Assembly (NCBI GenBank): GCA_002104905.1
Contig: MCFE01000387.1
Location: 19,321-83,320 of the forward strand
Direction: 5' to 3'
DNA: 64,000 nucleotides
Source: Basidiobolus meristosporus CBS 931.73
Lineage: Eukaryota; Fungi; Basidiobolomycota
Each line of letters begins with the position of its first letter. The first letter of the stretch is position 1. A program made the translations under genes and the position numbers. The notes below the pieces were generated by a model. It had not been told where the DNA came from. It was given only the letters and a program-made list of their open reading frames with translations, and searched no databases. Shown here in pieces: positions 9,130 through 64,000 of the stretch.

Positions 9130-10170
9130 TTTCAACCGCTGGGTAGGAACGCTGTTTCAGAAGCCAGCCTAGGGTATATATATGTTATTCCCCAATGTGA
9201 CCAGCCTTAGGGATTTTTGGACAGGGACTTCGATCGGTCTGTACACGAGAAAATACCAGTCTATCGATTGGTGCTTGAATCACCATAACATCACCAATTC
9301 CATAAAAACTGTCTACTCTCCGACCTCAACCAATACTCTGCGGTCACGTAACACCAAACTTGTAACAGTTTATCCATATCGATCACAAGCGAAAACTCCC
9401 TATTTTGGATGCTTGCCAACTGCAGCCACAGAATTGTAGCTATTCCAAAGACTCGCCAGATAACTTTGCTATGGAAGATGAAAGAATGCCGAAGTAGTGA
9501 ACCCTGGAGGTTACGGAAAATTCCATGCTACCGTTGAGGATTGGGGCGCCTGTAATATATGTCAACCGTTGGCCTTTATCTGTAGGTTCTATATAAAGTA
9601 TACGACAGGAAAATAAGAAACGGCGATTAGTTGCTTGTCACACTGAAGCTTCGAGAAATTTTGTTGTTTCCAAGTGCCCCAACCTCATTTTTTCCTTTGG
9701 TTGTCCTTAAGTAGGCCGAGATTGAGGACTGCAGTCAATGTAATATAGCCAATTTCTGAATGCGTTAATGGATATGATATCGGTGGGACCTGATGCCTTA
9801 ATTAGTATTTGTTAGTAGATTAGGCTTGCCAATTTTCGAGCTACCACGCTTTCACGTGAAACTGCCCGGGTTTGTTGTTTACGTAAAATACAGACCAATT
9901 TCGACCGAATGTGAGTTTCGATTCTACATTTCGGCTTTTCGGCACATGGTGGCTAGACCTGTGACAGCTCCTAATGAATTCGTACATATTCCATTCAAAT
10001 TGCTACAATGTGGTGTATTGTGTAAGGTATTAGCCAAGGTTTATTCTTCATTATATTGCATGTCCACAAAATGGACCATTCCAATTGACTACTAAAAATG
10101 ATACAAGAAATTGACTGATTACAAAAAGGACGACCGTTGATAATAAATAGCCAATGGAGATTAATCAGCA

Positions 10171-11689
10171 TCAACGGCGAGAGTTTCTATTAGGTGCGCT
10201 ACCGGCTGAAAACAACTGTCTGGGTGGGTTGATCAGCCTGGAGGTCGCTTCGTTATCACGGGGCTCCTCTTTGATGAATTGAACGTCATCTTCAGAAGAT
10301 TCACCTCGCGGCTCGCTCTTAACCACTACGTTCTCATCTGGTGGTGCAATTCGACCGGGCGTGCGCACGGCGGTTTGAGGCTTTTTATGGGATTGCGGGC
10401 GGGGTGGACTCTCAGGCTCCATATCATCGCTATGATCTCTAGAGCGCTTCGTTGGTGGAACCCGGTTTTTCATGTGAGCCGGCATGCGGTGCTTTCTGCT
10501 TACCAGATGAACTTGTTCGTAATCGTAGTTGTCGATGTTTAGGACGAACTCCATCATATGGTTGTAAGTTATAGTGTTGAAGCGAATGTCGATAAATTCG
10601 CTACGAACATGCTTGCGCATCTGCAGAAGGTCATTCTTCAATTGCTCCAGTGTTCTCTCCGGGTAGCGAGCGATGATGTACCCGAAAATTACAAACTCGA
10701 TGGGCGCCATGATCGTCGGGACGAAGAAAATGTCCAAGGAGTCCTCCACGAGCTTGCTGTACTTCCTGAAGGTATCAGTGCACCTGGCTCGAAAGTCAGG
10801 GTCGATGGTGATATTGGTCCTGAGGAACTTCTCGATATTGCTGGAGCTGGATTGCATTTTCATGGGCTCGTAATAGATCATGTGGATGGTTTGCGCTGCA
10901 AGTAAGTAGGGACGTGCACGACGATTGTCCATGATCTCTAATACGCGAGGATACTCGTCCAGCAACGTACGTACAAATTGCGCCATGGGGGTGGCAACTG
11001 CCTGAAGCTTTTCCGCAGCAGTAAGGGCGACGCCCATTTGTACTCTTGAGAAAATCTCATTCTAAAAATGGATTAGTCAGCCGTCGCGAGAGCTAAATCC
11101 TGGCTCATTCACAGTACCTCCTGCTCCATGGTTAGACCGTAATATTCAACGCAGATAAGCTCAGAGTAACGGAAATCTTCGCGCTCACGTTCAGTCAACA
11201 CATGTCTTCGGCTAACGGTAGGGTCCTCGTTGAACCAACGTTTGACAGCAACTGGGCTGTTTGGATCAATATGAGGAATGTCGTTATTCATAAAGCTAAA
11301 TGTCGATTGTGAGTATCAGTGCTTCTAGTGTGTAAAGGAACACAAATGAAATACCGTCTAATGGAAGACAAGCGCTGTTTTCCATCAATGCATACTTTCA
11401 AAAGTCTGCCATCAGGTAAACGCTTGCAAGAGAAGATAACCGGAGGAACATAGAAATTCTTCAGGATGGAATCTATCAGGTAACTCATTCGCTTTTCGGG
11501 CCACACAACGTCACGCTGAAACTCCGGACCTTTGGTAAGAGGATTAATAAGTGTGAAGTGGTGCCTAGATCAAATAAGCCACTTACAAAGATCGATAAGA
11601 TTATTCTCCATCATTTCGTGAAGCTTGTAAAGTTGATGCGTGACATTCCTCGGTTTGTTGAGAGCCTCTACGGCAGGAAGGCTTGACAT
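10171..11689 (-). CDS. DUF262 (GmrSD/SspE N-terminal, ParB/Srx-like) domain protein, multi-exon
   Basis: Spliced sequence gives LIDL-CPEFQRDVVW...YLIDSILKNFYVPPVIF...CIDGKQRLSSI and EIFSRVQMGVALTAAEKL, matching the QR and DGxQR motifs of DUF262. Confidence 0.75.
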
Positions 11690-33713: not shown

Positions 33714-33922
33714 CTAAGCCACCAAATGATACCACTGCTGTCAAATAAATTACCACACGAAATATCTACCCAATTTGAAAATTCCGTCTCTAGAAAATCC
33801 CGAAAACCTTACCAAACTCACTAGTATAGGCAGAATTATGGTTAGATAGCCCAAGGAGGTTTGATAATCGCGTAGATTCAGTCAGTGGCTTAGATGCCTA
33901 CTATGTTGCAAGCAGTATAAAA
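33714..33922 (+). promoter_or_regulatory. Promoter of solo repeat gene: two CTAAGCCAC sites (33714-33722; 33885-33893 reversed) and TATAAAA (33916-33922)
   Basis: Motifs read directly; the same motif/TATA arrangement precedes the paralogs at 56-63 kb. Confidence 0.65.
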
Positions 33923-33987
33923 GTATCCACCTTAGTCCTTGAAAAAGTGTGCTCAACTTCGCATTGAAGAAATCCTCCTTTGAAAAC

Positions 33988-35037
33988 ATGTCCTACAACC
34001 GCTCACCTCTTTCCCGTTCTCGCCAAAACGTTGGAAACAACTACGATGAGGAGCAGAACCGTAATCAAAATCGCTATGGTCGTGGATTAGGTCGTCAGTA
34101 CGACAATGAATATGAGCAATATCCTCGCAGCGGTCGCTATGGTCGCAACTTGGGTCGCCAATATGAGGATGAGGAAGAGCAAGAATATCCTCGTAGCCGT
34201 CGCTATGGCCGCGGCTTCGGTCGTCAGTATGAGGATGAGGAGCAAGAATATCCCCGCAGCCGTCGCTATGGCCGTGGATTTGGTCGCCAATATGAGGATG
34301 AGGAACAAGAATATCCTCGTAGCCGTCGTTATGGCCGCGGTTTCGGTCGTCAGTATGAGGATGAGGAACAAGAATATCCCCGCAGCCGTCGCTATGGCCG
34401 TGGCTTAGGTCGCCAATATGAGGATGAGGAGCAAGAATATCCTCGTAGCCGCCGCTATGGTCGTGGCTTTGGACGTCAATATGAGGATGAGGAGCAGGAA
34501 TATCCCTACAGCCGCCGCTATGGCCGTGGACTTGGTCGCCAATACGAGGATGAGGAGCAAGAATATCCCTACAGCCGCCGCTATGGCCGTGGACTTGGTC
34601 GCCAGTACGAGGATGAGGAGCAAGAATATCCCTACAGCCGCCGCTACGGTCGTGGCTTTGGACGTCAATATGAGGATGAGGAGCAAGAATACCCCTACAG
34701 CCGCCGCTATGGCCGTGGACTTGGTCGCCAATACGAGGATGAGGAACAAGAGTATCCTCGTAGCCGCCGCTATGGCCGTGGCTTTGGACGTCAATATGAG
34801 GATGAGGAGCAAGAATATCCCTACAGCCGCCGCTATGGCCGTGGCTTAGGTCGCCAATATGAGGATGAGGAGCAAGAATATCCTCGTAGCCGCCGCTACG
34901 GTCGTGGCTTAGGTCGCCAATATGAGGATGAGGAGCAAGAGTATCCCCGCAACCGTCGCTATGGCCGTAATCTGGGCCGCCAGTACGAAGGTGAGGAGCA
35001 ATACCCCCGTAACCGCCCATACGGCCGCCAATACTAG
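33988..35037 (+). CDS. Tandem-repeat Y/G/R/E-rich disordered protein, 349 aa, 15 units of ~21 aa
   Basis: ATG 66 nt after the TATA box. Units YGRG[FL]GRQYEDEEQEYP[RY]SRR differ mainly at third codon positions, which supports this frame. Confidence 0.85.
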   Translation: MSYNRSPLSRSRQNVGNNYDEEQNRNQNRYGRGLGRQYDNEYEQYPRSGRYGRNLGRQYEDEEEQEYPRSRRYGRGFGRQYEDEEQEYPRSRRYGRGFGRQYEDEEQEYPRSRRYGRGFGRQYEDEEQEYPRSRRYGRGLGRQYEDEEQEYPRSRRYGRGFGRQYEDEEQEYPYSRRYGRGLGRQYEDEEQEYPYSRRYGRGLGRQYEDEEQEYPYSRRYGRGFGRQYEDEEQEYPYSRRYGRGLGRQYEDEEQEYPRSRRYGRGFGRQYEDEEQEYPYSRRYGRGLGRQYEDEEQEYPRSRRYGRGLGRQYEDEEQEYPRNRRYGRNLGRQYEGEEQYPRNRPYGRQY

Positions 35038-46132: not shown

Positions 46133-46944
46133 TTATGAATGTATGCTGCGTCTTCTTACTCCTTGTAGGCATTTTATCTCCAAGTGCTCGATTTTCATGT
46201 CGAGGCGACCTTCATTGTTGATACCTTCATCATTCCACGGAACAGGTCCACCAGCCCACTCACTGGTGCCATCCTCTGTACTATCACCACCGTCCCAAAT
46301 TGAAAAGTTAATCCTGGTAGGGCCGGCTGGGAACTTGTAAACTCCCGAATTACGGTCTAAAGTTCGACTTTTGCTCAGTGTGCGTATAACTTTGTCGTTA
46401 ACTAACCATGTCAGAGAATCTGGTCTCCATTCCAGAGAGTATGTGATGAACTCTTTAGAGCTATCACTACCGACATACGTTCCGTTATTACTATAGACAA
46501 GCTCTCCTTTATAGAAGTAATTGCTTAGCGTGTCTCTTGGATTTCCTCCAAGCCACTCAAAATCCACTTCATCCTTATCACTGGCCATAGTGAACATTGC
46601 ACTGACAACGCCTTTGGTACCCGCAGTTCTTATGCGAGCATTGACCCGGCCGTATTTAAAGAAACTTTTTGTAGTTGCTTGAGCGCCAACTCCAAAGAAT
46701 TTCCCATCTGCCTGGGGAGTTTTCTTTAGGCGGAGTACCAGGCCATCTTGAAAATAATGCTCCCCTTCAATTGTCATACTACCAGTATCTTGCTTAAAAT
46801 CGTCATACAAGTCAGTACAGTCCTCTGATTGACAATAAGCACCGAGGGACACCAAAAGGAATATATAGACCTATAATAAACCCTTAGCCACAGGCGTTAA
46901 AATAACTTCATGTCTGCTGCTCTAACCTTAAGCAAAGCTGGCAT
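46133..46944 (-). CDS. Secreted GH16 glycanase/transglycosylase (Crh/Utr2-like); 3' end uncertain
   Basis: MPALLK|intron|VYIFLLVSLGAYCQ signal peptide; FKYGRVNARI, GVVSAMF, catalytic DEVDFEWLG, WRPDSLTW, FSIWDGG. Confidence 0.85.
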
Positions 46945-51096: not shown

Positions 51097-52003
51097 ATGA
51101 AAGTTGTCAGAATAAGCCACCCAGACGGAAGATTTTTCTCACTATTTCAACTTTGGTTATGGTAAATGTTGGCCTGTGAGTAGCCGCTATGCTTGTCTTG
51201 TGATCATATGATGGACTTTTAGGCTGCTCCACGGTCGTGGCTATAGCAGCCATTGGCATAAGTTCCCCGCATTCCAGGATGTGAGTGGGGTGATCGGGAC
51301 TTGTGTATCTGGTGCATTCTTACTGCTAATCGGTATCATGAACGCAATTGTCCTGGTTAGCATTTGGAAACAGCTGCAGACACTTCGTCGAGAGAAGGTG
51401 TACAGAGAGATTGATGTGGAGGAGATGCTCAACTCGGGAGGAGTCTTGTCCAGGTTCTTCAGACCAATCTTCAACTTCATCGATGCTAGCTGGAAGATGT
51501 ATCCGTTGGGGGTGTTGTTCGGGTTCGGGTTCGACACAGCCACCGAGATCACATTATTGGCGCTGTCTGCTACACAAGCCAACAACGGACTCAACATTGG
51601 ACTGATCCTATTCTTCCCGTTCCTATTCACTGCCGGAATGTCCCTGATTGACACGCTGGATGGCATGCTCATGTTGTGCACCTACAGCTGGGCCTTTATC
51701 TCGCCCATCCGCAAGATCTACTTCAACTTCACCATCACCTTCATCTCCGTGCTGATTGCCATCCTCATTGGACTGGTTCAGGTGTTCAACATTCTTGGTG
51801 ATAAGCTAGAGCTGACCGGATCATTCTGGGAGCTCTTTGGCACCATTGGAGATAATTTCGACATCGTTGGCTACTGCATCGTATCGTTGTTCGTGGTTAT
51901 CTGGATGCTGGCGATCTTGATCTACAAGTATGGTGGATTTGGGAAGTTCGAGAAGGACATTATGGTGGTGCGTGAGAAGTTGAAATTTAAGGTATTCTCT
52001 TAA
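51097..52003 (+). pseudogene. Probable pseudogene copy of NiCoT with a degraded 5' part
   Basis: 51097-51257 is a stop-containing, deleted version of the copy-2 N-terminus and lacks RHALDADH; 51258-51940 is near-identical to 53254-53936. Confidence 0.75.
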
Positions 52004-52849: not shown

Positions 52850-54017
52850 ATGGAGGTTTACAGGGCATTCATGACAGCTGAGAACAAGCCGCTTAGACGG
52901 AAGATCATCATTACTATTTCCACTTTGGTTGTGGTAAACATCGCCTTGTGGGTAGCTGCTATCCTTGCTTTGCGGCCATACAATGGACTCATCAGCCAGG
53001 CAGTTCTGGCATATACTCTTGGACTTCGCCACGCTTTAGATGCTGATCATATTACTGGTAGGTAGATCATCATCAGTTCTAATTGCTTACCGATTCGTGA
53101 CTAATGGATATCCAGCAATCGACAATGTCACGAGAAAGTTGATCCAGTCTGGCAAGAGACCATGCCTTGTGGGACTCTTCTTCTCTTTAGGCCACTCGAC
53201 AATTGTGGTTGTAGCAGCCATTGCCATCGCAGCCACGGCTACAGCAGTGGCCGATAAGTTCCCCGCATTCCGGGATGTGAGTGGAGTGATCGGGACTTGT
53301 GTATCTGGTGCATTCTTACTGCTAATCGGTATCATGAACGCAATTGTCCTGGTTAGCATTTGGAAACAGCTGCAGACACTTCGTCGAGAGAAGGTGTACA
53401 GAGAGATTGATGTGGAGGAGATGCTCAACTCGGGAGGAGTCTTGTCCAGGTTCTTCAGACCAATCTTCAACTTCATCGATGCTAGCTGGAAGATGTATCC
53501 GTTGGGGGTGTTGTTCGGGTTCGGGTTCGACACAGCCACCGAGATCACATTATTGGCGCTGTCTGCTACACAAGCCAACAACGGACTCAACATTGGACTG
53601 ATCCTATTCTTCCCGTTCCTATTCACTGCCGGAATGTCCCTGATTGACACGCTGGATGGCATGCTCATGTTGTGCACCTACAGCTGGGCCTTTATCTCGC
53701 CCATCCGCAAGATCTACTTCAACTTCACCATCACCTTCATCTCCGTGCTGATTGCCATCCTCATTGGACTGGTTCAGGTGTTCAACATTCTTGGTGATAA
53801 GCTAGAGCTGAACGGATCATTCTGGGAGTTCTTTGGCACCATTGGAGATAATTTCGACATCGTTGGCTACTGCATCGTATCGTTGTTCGTGGTTATCTGG
53901 ATGCTGGCGATCTTGATCTACAAGTATGGTGGATTTATGCAGCTCGAGAAGGACATTGTGGTGGTGCGTGGGGAGAAGGATACCATGATGATTGAGGAGG
54001 AAGAAATCAAAGTGTAA
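52850..54017 (+). CDS. NIC1: High-affinity nickel/cobalt transporter (NiCoT family), 1 intron
   Basis: GLRHALDADHIT|AIDNVTRK, FFSLGHSTIV, LFGFGFDTATE, LFTAGMSLIDTLDG signatures. Confidence 0.93.
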
Positions 54018-54962: not shown

Positions 54963-55216
54963 CTAGTACTTTCCAGATTGACGGCCAAAGTTAAGATCAT
55001 ATTGACTGTTGCGTGGATATTGCAGCCCTTCGCCTTCTTCATATTGTCGTCCTAAGCTTACGGTCATAGAGAAGGTTATGAGAGTATTCGAGTTCTTCGT
55101 CATCTTCATATCGTCTTCCTAAGCCACGACTATAGTGACGATTACGGGGAAACTCAGGATCTTCATCGTTCTCATATTGGCGACCAAATCTACGACTGTA
55201 ATGGCGACTGCGGGAT
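54963..55216 (-). pseudogene. 5'-truncated, frameshifted relic of the repeat-protein family
   Basis: SRSRHYSRRFGRQYENDEDPEFPRNRHY... then a frameshift to GRQYEEGEGLQYPRNSQYDLNFGRQSGKY*; no N-terminal exon or ATG region. Confidence 0.75.
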
Positions 55217-55728
55217 GTTGTAATCTTTGATGAATAACCACCCACGCTCTGCTGACAAATATTGTTAAAATATGTGTTGGTACAAGAGCATCGTATTCAG
55301 TACGGCTTCACTAATGTAATGGTGGACTTTGTAGAGAATAGAATAGCATATGTGTTTGAACGATGATATCAATCTATAGGGGAGGAGTGCTTGGCGAGGC
55401 TAAGCCACTCAACGATTTGATGATCCCAGCATATAATTAATGATATCGAAACAATGTGACAATTCCGGATCTCTACTGGGCCAATGGACATTCACCCTCA
55501 TGCAACTGATAAATATTGCCGAAAAATGGGTCGATGCAAAGCTTCATACACAACAGGGCTTCACTGTAATAGTGGTAGATTTTACTACTTTAAGTAGCAT
55601 CAGCTAGGCCAATATCCTTTGGAACTTGGTTGTGAAATATCAACTTTATTTTTACCAATCGTTTTAGAGGCGCAGAACATACCATTTAATCACCATGTAA
55701 AGTGGGATATAGCCAATACATACGCAGC

Positions 55729-56658
55729 TTAATACCATCCAGTTTGGCGACCTGAGCTACGGCCATAGTGGCGGCTACGAGAATATTCAAGCTCATCATC
55801 GTTTTCGTATTGACGACCGAAACCACGGCTATAACGACGGTTACGAGGATATTCGAGTTCTTCGTCTTCTTCATATTGACGGCCAAAGCCACGGCCATAA
55901 CGACGATTGCGAGGGTATTCAAGCTCTTCTTCACGACCGTAGCGGCGGCCGCGGGGATAGTAAGATTCCTTGCCATTTTCGTATCGACGACCTAGGCCAT
56001 AACCGTAGCGACGGCTGTGGGGGTATTCGAACACTTCATCGTTTTCATATTGACGACCAAATCCGTGACCGTAGCGCCGGCTGCGTGGATAATCAAGCTC
56101 CTCATCATCCTCATATCGACGCCCGAAGCCACGACCGTAGTGACGATTGCGGGGATACTCTAGCTCTTCGTCATCTTCATATTGACGTCCTAGACCACGG
56201 CCATAGCGACGATTATGTGGATATTCGAGCTCCTCATCATCTTCATATTGACGGCCAAAGCCACGACCATGGCGACGGTTGTGAGGATATTCAAGCTCCT
56301 CATCATCATATTGACGGCCAAATCCTCTGCCATAGCGGTGGTTGCGGGAGTAATCGGGTTCCTCATCATCTTCATGTTGACGGCCAAACCCGCGACTATA
56401 GCGACGATTGCGAGGATATCCAGGCTCTTCTTCATCCTCATATTGACGTCCAAATCTGCTCTCGTAACGATGGCTATGAGGGTATTCACGCTCCTCTTCA
56501 TCCTCATATCGACGATTGAGGCCACGTCCATAACGGCGGTTGGGAGAATACTCTTGTTCCTCACGTTCGTAGCGGGGTTGTTGCTGGTTGTTACGTTTGT
56601 TCAAGTCTTGCTGGTAACGAGAATCGTGGGTTTGACGAGGTTGTTGATAATTGGCCAT
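55729..56658 (-). CDS. Tandem-repeat Y/G/R/E-rich protein, array copy 1 (309 aa)
   Basis: MANYQQPRQ... then ~22-aa units YGRGFGRQYEDDEELEYPRNRR, ending GRQTGWY*; TATA at ~56740. Confidence 0.85.
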   Translation of the reverse strand: MANYQQPRQTHDSRYQQDLNKRNNQQQPRYEREEQEYSPNRRYGRGLNRRYEDEEEREYPHSHRYESRFGRQYEDEEEPGYPRNRRYSRGFGRQHEDDEEPDYSRNHRYGRGFGRQYDDEELEYPHNRRHGRGFGRQYEDDEELEYPHNRRYGRGLGRQYEDDEELEYPRNRHYGRGFGRRYEDDEELDYPRSRRYGHGFGRQYENDEVFEYPHSRRYGYGLGRRYENGKESYYPRGRRYGREEELEYPRNRRYGRGFGRQYEEDEELEYPRNRRYSRGFGRQYENDDELEYSRSRHYGRSSGRQTGWY

Positions 56659-57409
56659 GGTAGTAGAGAAAGCAAGGTCTTCGGAAGCTAGAGAACAAGT
56701 CGACAGAAGAATATGAAACAGATTTACTTCCTCCTTACCTTTTATACATTGAGGGCGACACATATGCCAAATGGTGGTGTGCTTGACGGGGCCAAGCCAC
56801 TCGATGATCCAAGCATATGGTCACAGACATCAAAGGGATGTTGCAATCCTTAATCTATAGCGGATCTTTGTGGAATGTTCATCCACAATCGATATTGGAT
56901 ATTGACAAATATTGTCAAAGTATGAGTTGGTACAAGAGCTACACATTTAGCACGAAATCCTTAAAGAGGTGGTAGAGAATAAATCAACATATGAGTCAGG
57001 GACTGGTATACTTCCACCGGAACTTAAAAGTAGTAAACGGGACGTACATCTAAAAATGAGCAGTGCTCGACGAGGCTAAGCCACTTGACGATTTGATGGT
57101 GCCAACATATGATTAACGATGTAGAAACAATGTAACGATTCCGGATCTATGCTTGGCTGATGGGCATTCACCCTCATGCTACTGATAAATATTGTCAAAA
57201 AATGGGTCGATGCAAAGGTTCATATACAACAGGGCTTCACTGCTACAGTGACGGATTTTGTTACATTGCGGCAGGTAACGTCAACTATACCAATATTCGT
57301 TGGAACTTGGCTATGAAATATCAACTTTATTTTTACCAATCATTTTAGAGGCGCAGAGCATACCATTTAATCACCATGTAAAGTGGGATATAGCCAATAC
57401 ATACGCAGC

Positions 57410-58408
57410 TTAATACCATCCAGATTGACGACCCGAGCTACGGCCATAGTGGCGGCTACGAGGATATTCAAGCTCATCATCGTTTTCGTATTGGCGACCG
57501 AAACCACGGCTATAACGACGGTTACGAGGATATTCGAGTTCTTCGTCCTCTTCATATTGACGGCCAAAGCCACGACCGTAGCGGTGGCTGCGGGGATAGT
57601 TAAGTTCCTCATCACCTTCATATTGGCGTCCTAAGCCACGGCCATAACGACGATTACGAGGATATTCAAGCTCTTCTTCACGACCGTAGCGGCGGCTGCG
57701 GGGATAGTCAAGTTCTTCATCATTTTCGTATTGGCGACCTAGGCCACGACCGTAGCGACGGCTGTGGGGGGATTCGAGCTCTTCATCATTTTCATATTGA
57801 CGACCAAATCCGCGACCATAGCGCCGGCTGCGTGGATAATCAAGTTCCTCATCATCCTCATATCGACGCCCGAAGCCACGACCATAGTGACGATTGCGGG
57901 GATACTCTAGCTCTTCGTCATCTTCATATTGACGTCCTAGACCACGGCCATAGCGACGATTATGTGGATATTCGAGCTCCTCATCATCTTCGTATTGACG
58001 GCCAAAGCCACGACCATAGCGATGGTTGCGGGGATACTCTAGCTCTTCGTCATCTTCATATTGACGGCCAAGCCCTCTGCCATAGCGATGGTTACGGGGG
58101 TAATCAAGTTCCTCGTCATCTTCATATTGACGACCCAAGCCACGGCCATAGCGGCGGTTACGGGGGTATTCAAACTCTTTGTTATCATCATACTGACGTC
58201 CAAATCTGTTCTCGTAACGATGGCTATGAGGGTATTCACGCTCCTCTTCATCCTCATATCGACGATTGAGGCCACGTCCATAACGGCGGTTGCGAGAATA
58301 CTCTTGTTCCTCACGTTCGTAGCGGGGTTGTTGCTGGTTGTTACGTCTGTTCAAGTCTTGCTCGTAACGAGAGCCGCGGGTTTGACGAGGTTGTTGATAA
58401 TTGGCCAT
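57410..58408 (-). CDS. Tandem-repeat protein, array copy 2 (332 aa)
   Basis: Same N-terminus, units and GRQSGWY* tail; intact frame. Confidence 0.85.
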   Translation of the reverse strand: MANYQQPRQTRGSRYEQDLNRRNNQQQPRYEREEQEYSRNRRYGRGLNRRYEDEEEREYPHSHRYENRFGRQYDDNKEFEYPRNRRYGRGLGRQYEDDEELDYPRNHRYGRGLGRQYEDDEELEYPRNHRYGRGFGRQYEDDEELEYPHNRRYGRGLGRQYEDDEELEYPRNRHYGRGFGRRYEDDEELDYPRSRRYGRGFGRQYENDEELESPHSRRYGRGLGRQYENDEELDYPRSRRYGREEELEYPRNRRYGRGLGRQYEGDEELNYPRSHRYGRGFGRQYEEDEELEYPRNRRYSRGFGRQYENDDELEYPRSRHYGRSSGRQSGWY

Positions 58409-59216
58409 GATGGTAGAGAGAGGAAGGTCTTCGGAAGTCGGTGGATAAATCGACACAAGAGTGTGGAACTGGTATGCCTTCACCTTACCTTATATACAGT
58501 GAACACAACTCAAATGCCGTGTGGCGGAGTGCTCGATAAGGCCAAGCCACTCGACGAATTGATGATCGAGGCATATGATTATGAAAATCACAGGATTTTG
58601 CAATCCTTGGTCCATACTTGATTTTTGATGAATGACCACTCACGCTCTACTTACAAATATTGTCAAAATATGGGTCGATACAAGAGAACCATATTCAACA
58701 CGGTTTCACTAATGCAGCGGTGGGGAATAAAGGGTCATGTGAGTCTGGCATACTTCCACCGGAACTTAAAAATAGCAAAGGCGAGATATATCTAAAGAGA
58801 GGAGTGCTTGACAAGGCTAAGCCACTTGGTGAATTGATGATCCTAACACATGATTAATGGCGTCGAAACAATGTGACAATTCCAGATCTATGCTTGATCT
58901 TTAATAAGCATTACCCATGTGTTACTGGCAAATCTTATCAAAGAATAGGTTGATGCGAGAGCTTCATATCAATGGGCCTTCACCCTCATGCTACTGACAA
59001 ATATTGTCGAAAATGGGTCGATACAAAAGCTTCATATTCAACAGGGCTTCACTGTTGCAGTGGTGGATTTTGCTTCATTATGCAAGTAATGTTAAATAAA
59101 CCAAAATATTTGGAACTTGATGAAATATCAACTTTATTTTTACCAATCATTTGAGATACGCAGAGCATACCAATTTATCACTATGTAAAGTGGGACATAG
59201 CCAGTACATATTCAAC

Positions 59217-59927
59217 TTAATACCATCCAGATTGACGACCTGAGCTACGGCCATAGTGGCGGCTACGAGTATATCCAAGCTCATCATCGTTTTCGTATTG
59301 GCGACCGAATCCACGGCCGTAACGACGTTGCGGGGATATTCAAGCTCATCATCATCTTCATATTGACGGCCAAAGCTACGACCGTAGCGGCGGCTACCGG
59401 GATAGTTAAATTCATCATCATCTTCATAATGGCGGTTGCGGGGATATTCGCCTTCTTCGTCATCTTCGTACTGATAGCCAAAACCACGACCGTTGCGGCG
59501 GCTAAAGTTCCTCATCGTACTCATATTGGCGACCTAGGCCACGACCATATCGACGGTTGCGGGGGTATTCAAGATCTTCAATGTTCTCATATTGACGACC
59601 TGAGCCACGGCTATAGCGGCGGCTATGTCGATATTCGAGTTACTCGTCATCTTCATAATGACGGCCTAATCCACGGTTGCTGGGATATTTAATCTCTTCA
59701 TCATCTTCATACTGACGTCCAAATCCGTGTTCGTAACGATGACTATGAGGATATTCATGCTCCTCAACATCTTCATTATGACGACTGAGGCCACGTCCAT
59801 AACGGCGGTTGCGAGAATACTCCTGTTCCTCACGTTCGTAGTGAGGTTGTTGCTGGCCGTTGCGTCTGCTTAGGTCTTGCTTGTAATGAGGACCACGAGT
59901 TTGACGGGGTTGCTGATAACTGGCCAT
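59217..59927 (-). pseudogene. Tandem-repeat protein, array copy 3, disrupted
   Basis: GAA>TAA nonsense at 59640 plus a later deletion/frameshift; homologous tail GRQSGWY* retained. Confidence 0.8.
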
Positions 59928-60384
59928 GATGGTGTAGAAGAAGTAAGTCTTCAGAAGTCAGATAGTAAGTTGACAGAAGAGTGTAGAACTAGTAAGCCAC
60001 CACCTTACCTTATATATAATTAAAGTGACATAGATGTTAAGTGGAGTGACTGCTAAAACCAAGCCACTCGATAAATTGATAATCGGAGCATATGATTACA
60101 GATATCAAAGTGATGTTGCAATTCAAGATCTCTACGGCATCCTTGATGGATATTCACTCACACACTACTGACAAATTTTGTGCAAGTTCGGACCGAAACT
60201 CTAGCTGAAAAATTTCGTGGATGCGCCAGGATATTATTCAGGGTTAGGTTTTATTACAGTATGAAAGCATCAATTCGACCATCAGCATATTGTACTTGAT
60301 TATGACATAAATTTATTTTCAATCGATATGTATCATTTAATCACAATACATAAAGTGAGATATGGCCAGTATATATGCAATTTA

Positions 60385-61332
60385 CTACCATCCAGATTGG
60401 CGACCTGAGCTACGGCCATAGTGCCGGTTACCGGGGTATTTAAGCTCTTCATCGTTCTCATATTGGCGACCGAATCCGCGGCTATAACGACGATTACGGG
60501 GATACTCGAGTTCTTCGTCATCTTCATATTGGCGTCCCAAGCCACGACCATAGTGACGATTACGGGGGTATTCAAGCTCTTCATCTTCATATTGACGACT
60601 GAATCCCCGGCCATAGCGACGGTTGCGGGGATACTCAGGTTCCTCATCGTCTTCATGTTGACGGCCAAACCCGCGACCATAGCGACGATTGCGAGGATAT
60701 TCAAGGTCCTCATCATCTTCATATTGACGGCCAAAGCCACGACCATAGCGACGGTTACGGGGGTATTCGAGTTCCTCATCATCTTCATATTGACGACCAA
60801 ATCCACGACCGTAACGACGGTTGCGGGGATACTCAGGCTCCTCTTCATCTTCATATTGACGGCCAAATCCTCTGCCATAGCGGCGGTTGCGGGGGTATTC
60901 GAGTTCCTCTTCATCTTCAGAGCGACGACCAAATCCACGACCATAGCGACGGTTGCGGGGATATTCGAGCTCCTCATCGTCTTCATATCGACGGCCAAAT
61001 CCTCTGCCATAGCGACGGTTGCGGGGGTAATCGAGCTCCGCATCATCATCTTGGTGACCAAATCCACGTCCATAGTGACGGTTGCTGGGGTATCCAAGCT
61101 CTTCATCATGTTCATGCTGACGTCCCAATCTATGCTCATAACGATGGCTATGAGGATATTCACGCTCCTCTTCATCCTCATATCGACGATTGAGGCCACG
61201 TCCATAACGGCGGTTGCGAGAATACTCTTGTTCCTCACGTTCGTAACGAGATTGTTGCTGATTGTTATGTCTGTTCAAGTCTTGCTCGTAACGAGAACCG
61301 CGGGTTTGACGAGGTTGTTGATAATTGGCCAT
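60385..61332 (-). CDS. Tandem-repeat protein, array copy 4 (315 aa)
   Basis: Intact frame from MANYQQPRQ; ends GRQSGW* (terminal Tyr codon changed to a stop). Confidence 0.85.
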   Translation of the reverse strand: MANYQQPRQTRGSRYEQDLNRHNNQQQSRYEREEQEYSRNRRYGRGLNRRYEDEEEREYPHSHRYEHRLGRQHEHDEELGYPSNRHYGRGFGHQDDDAELDYPRNRRYGRGFGRRYEDDEELEYPRNRRYGRGFGRRSEDEEELEYPRNRRYGRGFGRQYEDEEEPEYPRNRRYGRGFGRQYEDDEELEYPRNRRYGRGFGRQYEDDEDLEYPRNRRYGRGFGRQHEDDEEPEYPRNRRYGRGFSRQYEDEELEYPRNRHYGRGLGRQYEDDEELEYPRNRRYSRGFGRQYENDEELKYPGNRHYGRSSGRQSGW

Positions 61333-61860
61333 GATGGTAGAGAGAGGAAGGTCTTCGGAAGTCAGTGGATAAATCGACAGAAGAGTGTGGAACTGGTATG
61401 CCTTCACCTTACCTTATATACAGTGAATACGACTCAAATATCAAGTGGAAGAGTGCTTGACAAAGCTAAGCCACTTGATGAATTAATGAATCAAGCATAT
61501 GATTGATACTGTAATGGAAGATTGTTATCTAGGATCAATTGATTCGATTCATTTACTCCTTGCGAATATTATCGATGAGTATATTGATGTGCGAAATTGA
61601 ATGAATGCCACAGTGGCCAGCTTAGACTTCTTCGCAAATTCTATTTCTCTGCTAGGGAAGTCACCAGACATTATACACTCCAGCTTTTTACGACTTGTTT
61701 GCTCAATAATATTGAGTCGCGTTGTAACTAGCTATATTAGCACACATTGTTTGGCTCGTTAAACACGCCAAATAGATCATTGAGGTTAAAGCAATACCCC
61801 AGTTCAACAACACTTTTGCATTGCTTAATAGCGTCAATATCTGCTATAAACATATTGAAC

Positions 61861-61964
61861 ATGGTTGTGGCGAGGGCTATGGGGATATCTTGGTTCATAG
61901 TCATTCTCATATTGATGGCCGGATATTAGACTTCATCATTACTTTGATATTGACGACCTATGCC
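61861..61964 (-). pseudogene. Short, heavily decayed relic of the repeat family
   Basis: Reverse strand reads GIGRQYQSNDEV* and QYENDYEPRYPHSPRHNH in broken frames. Confidence 0.5.
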
Positions 61965-62331
61965 ATTAGGTGAGTGATCAGTGTTCATCTGTGACAGGTA
62001 GTGTGGATGTAGCAGCCAATGGTAGTCGATAATAAATGCTCAAGGGAATGTTAAACACAGCAATTTCATGCAGCATTCCTCACATGAATAAACTTTACGA
62101 GGTAGAGATGCGTTGTTTATATTTGAAATACAGACTAGTATGAGATCGGATTTGGGCAATTTTTTTTGTAGTACTACTTGATCCGTACAGTATACAGACA
62201 TTAGAGTAGAATATTAGCTATGCTCACTGTTTATGTTTTGAACATTTATTGTTAATCGTTTGTTAGGCTAATAGATATTTTTTCTTCCTTTAGACTCAAG
62301 TGCATCGCTATAACGATTGATACAAGATCAT

Positions 62332-63403
62332 TTAGTAGGCCTTGTCATTCTCATACTGACGGTTCCATCCACGTCCATATCGGCGACTGCGAGAGTATTG
62401 CTCCTCCTCGTCCGCATTGCGACCGAATCCGCGACCATAGCGACGACTGCTGGGGTATTCGAGTTCTTCGTCATCCTCATATTGACGTCCCAAGCCGCGA
62501 CCATACTGGCGGCTGCGAGGGTATTCAAGCTCCTCGTCATCTTCGTATTGACGATCAAAGCCACGACCGTAGCGACGACTGCGGGGATATTCGAGCTCCT
62601 CATCATCTTCATACTGACGTCCCCAGCGCGGCCATATTGACGGCTGCGAGGGTATTCGAGCTCCTCATCATCTTCATATTGGCGGCCTAGGCCACGACCG
62701 TAGCGACGGCCAAGGTTACGGCTCCGGCGACCACTACGAGGATATTCGAGTTCCTCATCGTCTTCGTACTGACGTCCCCAGCCACGGCCATACTGACGGC
62801 TGCGTGGGTATTCGAGCTCCTCATCATCTTCATATTGGCGACCTAGGGCCACGACCGTAGCGACGGTTGCGGGGATATTCAAGCTCCTCGTCGTTCCCAT
62901 ATGACGACCGAAACCGCGGCCATATTGGCGATTGTGGGAGCGCTCCCACTCACGGTTGCGGGGATATTCGAGCTCCTCGTCATCTTCATATTGACGTCCC
63001 AAGCCACGACCGTACTGGCGGCTACGAGGGTATTCGAGCTCCTCATCATCGTCATATTGGCGTCCCAAGCCACGACCGTAGCGACGGCTGCGAGGGTATT
63101 CGAGCTCCTCGTCGTTCTCATATTGACGTCCGAATCCACGCTCGTAGCGGCGGCTACGGGGGAGTTCCAACTCCTCATCATCTTCATATTGACGTCCAAA
63201 TCTGCGGCCATATTGGCGATTGTGAGAGCGCTCCCACTCAGCATCCTGTTCGTGACCGAATCCGCGGCCACGCTGGATGTTCCTGGATTGTCTCTCATTG
63301 TTACGCTCATATTGATCGTTGTGCTGGTGATGATGGTTATGTGCTCCCTGCTCTTGTTCATAGTTAGAGCCACGGAGTGAGAAGGCTGTTGAGAGTAGGA
63401 CAT
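62332..63403 (-). pseudogene. Divergent repeat-protein copy 5 with several 1-nt frameshifts (pseudogene or uncorrected sequencing errors)
   Basis: ATG TCC TAC TCT CAA (MSYSQQPSHS...), repeat units distributed over three frames, ending ENDKAY*; TATAAAA and CTAAGCCAC intact upstream. Confidence 0.65.
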
Positions 63404-64000
63404 GTTGATGGCTCGATAAGGATCTGTTCTCAAATCAGAAGAGATTGATGCACTTTGACGCTATCGTCAAGTATTTTATACTTGTCGGATTCCTACTGTC
63501 AGTAGGTAAAGAGCTAAGCCACAAAAGCATGGCCAGGAGGTCTAAGATGATTAGTGATGTGGGGGATATGTTGCAATTTTGGTTCAATCGTTCAACTGTG
63601 CACTGAGAAACCCAACCCGACCATTCAATTATACGGTTGGCATGACGTATTCAAAAAATGGGAAGATTCGAGGAGCCTGTACGATAACGAAACCTGCACT
63701 CCATGCTTTCCTCATAACGTTGTTGATCTTACCATCAAGTGCCTATCCTCATTCAGATACCTCACAGATACATGTTCTACCATGTTCTCTCTTCTAAATC
63801 TCCCGGTGGCTTAGGAGGCTGATTGAAACTTGCAAGTCGATGCATGTCACTTACTCTCTTACGGTGTTGTTGATTGTGGCCAGATAAAAATCATGATTGT
63901 TAAGCTAAGCCACTTGGATTGTGTAGTCTCGTGTATGCTTGTTTTCCACTGAACAAATCCAGTGAAAATATACAGCAGCCGATTACCGAAAGCCGAACTC

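Follow-up and report, generated by a model that had tools for sequence, protein, structure and literature searches.

A tandem array of arginine- and tyrosine-rich repeat-protein genes with a shared promoter signature in the fungus Basidiobolus meristosporus

The N-terminus of Ddx4 is a phase-separating disordered region in which arginine/aromatic stickers are combined with charge blocks. In the RGG domain of LAF-1, charge segregation, arginine and tyrosine each raise the propensity to phase-separate (bioRxiv 10.1101/2020.01.06.894576), and hydrophilins are proteins with more than 6% glycine and a hydrophilicity index above 1 that are induced by osmotic stress (PMC11277543). Here we describe a family of repeat proteins from Basidiobolus meristosporus CBS 931.73 that invites comparison with these systems. 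The genes were detected in a 64,000-nucleotide (nt) stretch of contig MCFE01000387.1 (hereinafter the window), where seven head-to-tail minus-strand copies of one gene, denoted A to G in the order of their coordinates, occupy positions 54963-63403 (Table 1). Three of the copies are intact (B, C and E) and four are dead (A, D, F and G); a solo paralogue (S) is located 19.9 kb away from the array. As judged from the sequences, the family is real and apparently lineage-specific, and combines an unusual, strongly conserved design with a conserved promoter signature. The original prediction, in which all seven members and the distance of about 20 kb to the solo copy had been given, is borne out as far as the observation of the array is concerned; its interpretation, a rapidly turning-over family in a birth-and-death array, is partly supported.

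The repeat unit and its reading frame

The array proteins (~40 kDa) consist of 12-14 units of 22 amino acids (aa), with the consensus RNRRYGRGFGRQYEDDEELEYP, in which a basic/aromatic half, RNRRYGRGFGRQY, is combined with an acidic half, EDDEELEYP. Each unit contains five arginines, three tyrosines and an eight-residue acidic run per 22 residues, and there is a proline and a glycine in every unit. The difference in unit length between the array (66 nt, 22 aa) and the solo gene (63 nt, 21 aa) was found as predicted, and Tandem Repeats Finder accordingly detected 66-nt arrays in four blocks at 55.7-63.2 kb and a single 63-nt array at 34.1-35.0 kb. The intact copies B, C and E are uninterrupted open reading frames (ORFs), all with the start MANYQQPRQT, and the C-terminal tails end in an aromatic residue, exactly as listed before (GRQY, GWY, GW, GKY, KAY).

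The ratio of nonsynonymous to synonymous divergence (dN/dS) between the intact copies is low, namely 0.23 for B-C, 0.15 for B-E and 0.11 for C-E, and the units within one gene show the same trend even more sharply: the proportion of synonymous differences (pS) is 0.66-0.73 and that of nonsynonymous differences (pN) 0.12-0.16, with dN/dS of 0.05-0.08, and the unit heterozygosity at codon positions 1, 2 and 3 is 0.11, 0.13 and 0.48. In a six-frame test, a low pN/pS together with the absence of stops was observed solely in the Arg/Gly/Tyr-acidic frame; the antisense frame that shares its wobble positions with this frame contains about 40 stops. Long hydrophobic antisense ORFs were also considered as real genes and ruled out by pN/pS ≥ 1. 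By this measure, the substitution pattern shows that strong purifying selection maintains the peptide in every unit. Because the synonymous sites are saturated, the units are old, and what keeps them alike is selection acting at the peptide level, not a recent homogenisation of the DNA; hence the rapid turnover originally ascribed to the family is overstated.

These results bear directly on the null reading, under which the locus would be no functional gene family but satellite-like repetitive DNA whose ORFs are accidental, or else an artefact of assembly. Repeats of this kind do keep several frames open, the array lies at the end of a contig, and the public gene models are inconsistent. Nevertheless, purifying selection in one frame with saturated synonymous sites, the preservation of the promoter and of an orthologue in a second species (see below), and the divergence of the copies, which at ~20% is incompatible with duplicated reads, bring this reading close to refutation, and we assign it almost no weight. 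Given the same ~20% difference in DNA, the array is no assembly duplication artefact, a possibility that the original prediction had named as one that would overturn it.

The shared promoter and the relatives of the family

A composite promoter, GTGGCTTRG-N(22-45)-TATAWAAK, is found in front of 6/6 copies with a preserved start codon (S, B, C, D, E and G) and nowhere else in the window. A search with the slightly wider pattern GTGGCTTRG-N(15-45)-TATAWAAK yielded 6 occurrences vs 0 expected, each of which ends 64-80 nt before a family ATG; the shared promoter motif suspected at the outset is real. The extended element AGTGGCTTRG occurs in the window 10 times vs 0.2 expected. Its sole match outside the family, at 46548-46557, lies inside a coding exon of a GH16 gene (codons E-W-L-G) and was dismissed as a chance match.

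The solo gene S has a syntenic orthologue in Basidiobolus ranarum, KAK9720696.1 (an 88-aa model, also with 21-aa units). It sits at a contig end, and this contig is collinear with the window over 24.8-34.4 kb at 70-80% DNA identity. The same promoter arrangement is present 74 nt before the ATG of this orthologue; since it is kept although the surrounding DNA has diverged, the composite promoter qualifies as a phylogenetic footprint. A TTGACAATATT half-match was noticed ~85 nt upstream of the B. ranarum motif (at ~9795 in the stretch of JASJQH010007005.1). The model of the orthologue itself (10001-10301 in the same stretch) ends at a stop that leaves 34 nt to the contig end, and beyond it units continue in another frame, which could be either a lesion or an assembly problem within the repeat.

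In the array, an inverted repeat, TTGACAA-N3-TTGTCAA, is located ~100 nt upstream of each GTGGCTTRG element, and in the B-C and C-D spacers the upstream module comprising the inverted repeat and GTGGCTTRG occurs twice in tandem, the distal copy being found 275-343 nt away from the first, with 78-82% identity between the two. At 63905-63914 there is one more AGTGGCTTAG, which is not followed by a TATA box; it is situated 500 nt upstream of G, with 95 nt separating it from the contig end, and may represent either G's own distal module or the margin of another copy lying outside the contig. For learning when the family is switched on, the conserved promoter signature provides a direct point of entry.

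Beyond the two Basidiobolus species, no relatives were detected in the collections that were searched. A library-wide HMMER search against 1.84 billion representative proteins produced 7 hits, with one true relative, the protein from B. ranarum. The best HMMER hit, P0001 (E = 1.4e-19), gave only a gappy alignment with E of 0.006 in a composition-adjusted BLASTP comparison and was classified as a compositional look-alike; the hits P0003-P0007 are unrelated repeat proteins. For B, C, E and S, nothing was found in Pfam below E = 0.3, including LEA_1 to LEA_6, dehydrin and SMP; there was no match in the PDB below E = 0.3 and no usable match in the ESM Atlas. In the JGI metagenomes, a peptide-pattern scan returned 212 candidates, none of which was confirmed, and screening with a degenerate DNA pattern for YGRGFGRQY yielded 10 matches, all of them single, due to chance and without repeats. 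A word-indexed protein search with copy C found nothing, being swamped by low-complexity candidates, and the same search with the N-terminal head of C yielded 1 candidate and no hit. An exact look-up showed that B, C, E and S are absent from the protein collection, and literal motif strings had no match in the literature searched, which did not extend to Basidiobolus papers. On this evidence, all members known to date appear to come from Basidiobolus (B. meristosporus and B. ranarum).

Structure and history of the array

The coordinates of all family members and associated elements are given in Table 1.

Table 1. Members of the repeat-protein family and associated elements in the window
Feature	Position in window	Strand	Description
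Promoter of S	33885..33923	(+)	GTGGCTTAG, 22 nt, TATAAAAG
Solo paralogue S	33988..35037	(+)	349 aa, 21-aa units
Relic A	54963..55245	(-)	last 3-4 units and tail GRQSGKY; 3' flank down to ~54869
Inverted-repeat sites	55253-55268, 56900-56935, 57180-57215, 58651-58666, 58995-59010		
Copy B	55729..56658	(-)	intact, 309 aa, 12 units, tail GRQTGWY
Promoter of B	56739..56800	(-)	GTGGCTTGG, 45 nt, TATAAAAG, then ~80 nt to ATG
B-C spacer	56801..57409	(-)	tandem duplicate of upstream module, 280 nt apart
Copy C	57410..58408	(-)	intact, 332 aa, 13 units
Promoter of C	58489..58550	(-)	GTGGCTTGG ... TATATAAG
Copy D	59217..59927	(-)	pseudogene
Promoter of D	60009..60067	(-)	composite pattern still matched in the pseudogene
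Copy E	60385..61332	(-)	intact, 315 aa, tail GRQSGW; central units reshuffled
Promoter of E	61413..61474	(-)	GTGGCTTAG ... TATATAAG
Relic F	61861..61964 (approx)	(-)	~two decayed unit-like peptides, stop and frameshift
Copy G	62332..63403	(-)	most divergent member; head MSYSQQPS, tail NDKAY
Promoter of G	63473..63522	(-)	GTGGCTTAG, 33 nt, TATAAAAT

The three intact ORFs coincide with those predicted. The nonsense pseudogene D is more broken than had been claimed: in addition to the in-frame stop near 59640, it carries frameshifting deletions of 11 nt (~59505) and 1 nt (~59328) relative to C as well as further in-frame deletions of 12, 24 and 240 nt. With respect to the two predicted relics, A is solid, with 283-358 nt matching the 3' ends of C and E at 70-73% identity, one frameshift and a stop; its 5' part has been deleted and the proximal promoter was lost with the same deletion. 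Relic F is only weakly supported, by a single blastn match of 38 nt (79% identity, E = 3e-4). The divergent copy G was correctly described as frameshifted, its reading frame switching at least 4 times. An alternative in which the frame changes of G are introns was rejected because the two-intron, 322-aa solutions obtained require an "intron" of 23 nt and leave out-of-register stretches in place. The copies are not uniformly spaced at 1.5-1.8 kb as thought before: the measured stop-to-stop distances along the array are uneven, 0.77, 1.68, 1.81, 1.17, ~1.48 and ~0.47 kb. As base 64000 of the window is the end of the 83,320-bp contig MCFE01000387.1 (window positions are contig positions minus 19,320), seven copies is a lower bound.

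Self-similarity analysis shows that the duplicated block is a cassette of ~1.7 kb that includes the gene with its flanks (~80% identity). Together with the single orientation and the mixture of intact and decayed paralogues, this whole-cassette homology supports the proposed birth-and-death tandem array. Copies B and C correspond unit by unit, with identities of 83-100%, and have in common the shortened 14-aa unit with YGREEELEYP that had been pointed out before. Orthology across B, C and E is seen for the first two units and for the last one; the middle of E has been reshuffled, such that E4 corresponds to E6, E5 to E7 and E9 to B3, in agreement with the recombination postulated at the level of units. 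Recombination at the gene level is evident from a sliding-window comparison: in the promoter-proximal stretch and 5' untranslated region, C shares 98% identity with E (74% further upstream), but along the body and 3' flank it matches B at 80-100%, the C-E identity there being 50-84%. Combining an E-like 5' end with a B-like body and 3' flank, C is a mosaic, the product of unequal crossover or gene conversion.

Synonymous divergence (dS) between the intact copies amounts to 0.26 for B-C, 0.69 for B-E and 0.77 for C-E, values at odds with rapid turnover. Synonymous sites are saturated (dS ≥ 1.7) when orthologues are compared between B. meristosporus and B. ranarum, so that copies B to E appear to be younger than the split from B. 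ranarum, with the proviso that any gene conversion would have lowered dS. In its head (MSYSQQPS...), G stands between the solo gene (MSYNRSP...) and B-E (MANYQQP...), and, to judge from this intermediate sequence, G looks like the oldest array member. No family member was found within 5.8 kb downstream of the B. ranarum nickel/cobalt transporter (NiCoT) gene that most closely matches the one flanking the array, where the orthology of the locus is unproven and the assembly breaks inside repeats, and there was none in the paralogous B. meristosporus NiCoT locus that was examined. Taken together, these comparisons show that the array originated in the B. meristosporus lineage through segmental duplication and was subsequently remodelled by decay and by unequal crossover or gene conversion. 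This structural and evolutionary part of our explanation is, in our estimate, very probably correct. The array is also a dated case of genes being born, recombining and dying.

Two tandem NiCoT genes (Pfam NicO), at 51281-52003 and 52850-54017, directly adjoin the array, and at least 2 further NiCoT genes are present on other contigs of the B. meristosporus genome. Overall, the window contains few long ORFs and zero tRNA genes, as expected of intron-bearing fungal DNA. In the public annotation, the gene model of B is single-exon and correct. Copies C, D and E (57410-61332) are merged into one 861-aa spliced gene and the frameshifted G is patched into a 322-aa spliced gene, both apparently gene-finder artefacts. 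The annotation is thus wrong at two places of the locus, and the family, missing from large protein libraries, is easily overlooked.

Proposed function and comparison with known systems

The composition of the proteins is extreme: arginine makes up 20-21% of the residues, aspartate and glutamate together ~22-23%, tyrosine 12-13% (16% in S) and lysine under 1%; there is no cysteine or isoleucine, and B keeps one valine. The fraction of charged residues is 0.43-0.45 at a net charge per residue of -0.003 to -0.016, and the charges are strongly segregated, with the patterning parameter kappa at 0.40-0.43 in B, C and E (0.40-0.46 including S) vs 0.167 +/- 0.026 for shuffled sequences, that is, ~9 standard deviations above. 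Glycine, at 11.3-13.5%, exceeds the 6% hydrophilin threshold, the grand average of hydropathy on the Kyte-Doolittle scale is -2.30 to -2.37, so the hydrophilicity index lies above 1.0, and the isoelectric points are 6.1-6.4. With a high charged fraction, near-zero net charge, segregated charges and no predicted stable fold, the proteins have the attributes of an intrinsically disordered block polyampholyte. Self-association is expected of such a chain because it is multivalent, its charge blocks are segregated, and it is rich in arginine and tyrosine.

On these grounds, we tentatively favor the possibility that the proteins are self-associating, hydrophilin-like formers of a condensate or gel. 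Each chain would be a multivalent block polyampholyte whose Arg/Tyr blocks bind the acidic blocks and tyrosines of other chains through electrostatics and Arg-Tyr contacts, such that a reversible droplet or gel would form upon a rise in protein concentration or a shift in water or salt. The condensed protein would then act as a hydrophilin-like cytoplasmic protectant, for example, in conidia or zygospores, during gut passage or upon drying; the shared promoter would switch this protectant on, and several co-regulated copies would raise the dose. The explanation as a whole, that is, the history of the array together with this mechanism, we judge to be moderately probable; the mechanism by itself we hold to be less likely than not.

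Several considerations weigh against this mechanism or restrict its reach. It is drawn entirely from composition and patterning, and "hydrophilin" denotes an operational class, not a homology family. AlphaFold2 returned a mean pLDDT (predicted local distance difference test score) of 36.6 and no secondary structure, which fits the predicted full disorder of the proteins, but the alignment consisted of only 4 paralogues, for which low confidence is expected anyway. Codon use carries no clear mark of high expression: 90% of the arginine codons are CGY, and tyrosine, phenylalanine and aspartate favor T-ending codons, unlike in the background genes (the reference ORF taken as "RPS3" is probably out of the true coding frame, and no conclusion was drawn from this comparison). 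The neighboring genes (the two NiCoT genes, a methyltransferase and the GH16 glycoside hydrolase) offer no functional hint. Finally, the case for restriction to Basidiobolus is weak, as B, C, E and S are themselves absent from the protein libraries and no fungal genome collection was scanned.

The abundance of arginine (20-21% of residues) is also compatible with an RG-rich scaffold that binds RNA or DNA. Under this alternative, the GRGFGR blocks would bind nucleic acid, perhaps in an arginine-methylated form, and the acidic blocks would be built-in competitors, so that the protein would organize a nucleolar, ribonucleoprotein-granule or chromatin compartment instead of being a general protectant. 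Each protein contains 9-12 RG and 20-24 GR dipeptides, flanked by aromatic residues; RG-rich proteins phase-separate as well (bioRxiv 10.1101/2020.01.06.894576), and repeated basic-acidic motifs drive the assembly of the RNA-binding protein U1-70K (PMC6834393). However, a search of the family proteins for RGG and RG-x0-4-RG motifs gave 0 matches, RG and GR occurring only singly in the units, Pfam revealed no RNA-binding domain, whether RRM, KH or another, and the approximately zero net charge with 1:1 acid blocks should weaken binding to a polyanion. We consider a nucleic-acid scaffold unlikely.

No signal peptide was recognized in the proteins, the maximum 12-residue hydropathy in the first 50 residues being -1.3 to -1.9 (a heuristic, not a dedicated predictor). 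This result affects two further readings. The first is that the proteins are structural or storage components of spores, whether an arginine-rich nitrogen reserve, a dityrosine-cross-linked, tyrosine-rich material of the conidial or zygospore wall, or an adhesive. The high content of tyrosine (12-16%) and arginine would suit such roles, and several gene copies with a canonical TATA promoter are common for abundant stage-specific products, but without a signal peptide or a hydrophobic N-terminus classical export to the wall or into an adhesive is unlikely, and a mere amino-acid store has no need for strict conservation of the whole 22-residue pattern; this role seems to us improbable. The second reading takes the proteins for precursors of repeated peptides, the units being excised at RR sites in a Kex2-type manner or as in ribosomally synthesized and post-translationally modified peptides (RiPPs). 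Dibasic RR/KR sites do occur at the unit borders, 11-13 per protein, and the repeated cores are nearly identical; against it stand the missing signal peptide, the lack of tailoring-enzyme genes adjoining the array, and units that are devoid of cysteine, 22 aa long and highly charged. Such processing is very improbable.

The preferred mechanism of self-association can be extended, as an admittedly speculative and rather unlikely proposal, to a regulon of Basidiobolus's own: solo and arrayed genes for self-coacervating proteins would be controlled by a dedicated factor that recognizes GTGGCTTRG upstream of a TATA box, and the strictly periodic Arg/Tyr and acidic blocks would turn the cytoplasm reversibly into a gel or a glass, so that spores would be protected while they dry or pass through the gut of an amphibian. 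Were this correct, the regulon would be a fungal counterpart, unrelated in sequence, of the tardigrade CAHS or plant LEA systems. If the mechanism of self-association itself is true, the family would provide a natural, near-ideal block polyampholyte, with a fixed 22-residue period, a charge ratio of ~1:1 and 3 tyrosines and 5 arginines per unit, and a ready in vivo model of charge patterning and Arg-Tyr contacts in a culturable frog-gut fungus.

Among the proteins with which the family can be compared, P0001 (619 aa, prokaryote- or phage-like, from ENA/Logan contigs of 14-31 kb) resembles it in a long run of alternating SRRYGRRF and acidic blocks, but possesses a globular N-terminus and zinc-ribbon-like CxxC pairs, and is read as a convergent look-alike of the fungal unit. 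In the low-complexity domain of U1-70K (PMC6834393), alternating basic and acidic motifs also mediate self-assembly; these are short R/K-D/E dipeptide runs within an RNA-binding protein, in contrast to the 9-13-residue blocks with tyrosine that make up a stand-alone protein in Basidiobolus. The resemblance to hydrophilins and LEA proteins (Hsp12, Sip18 and Stf2 of yeast; LEA proteins of plants) extends to the glycine content and hydrophilicity, the disorder, the repeat-based architecture and the multigene organization. Unlike those proteins, the Basidiobolus family has no LEA or hydrophilin match in Pfam and is rich in arginine and tyrosine instead of lysine, alanine and threonine, and, with proline and glycine in each unit, a drying-induced amphipathic helix is unlikely. 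The RGG domain of LAF-1 is likewise disordered and rich in arginine, glycine and tyrosine/phenylalanine, and its self-association is set by charge segregation and Arg-Tyr contacts. Compared with LAF-1 RGG and Ddx4, the Basidiobolus proteins show no sequence homology and lack a helicase, an RNA-binding domain and RGG triplets; moreover, they are far more regular, with a 22-aa period and the entire protein consisting of the repeat, and whereas LAF-1 RGG has been described as well mixed, their charge blockiness is far higher.

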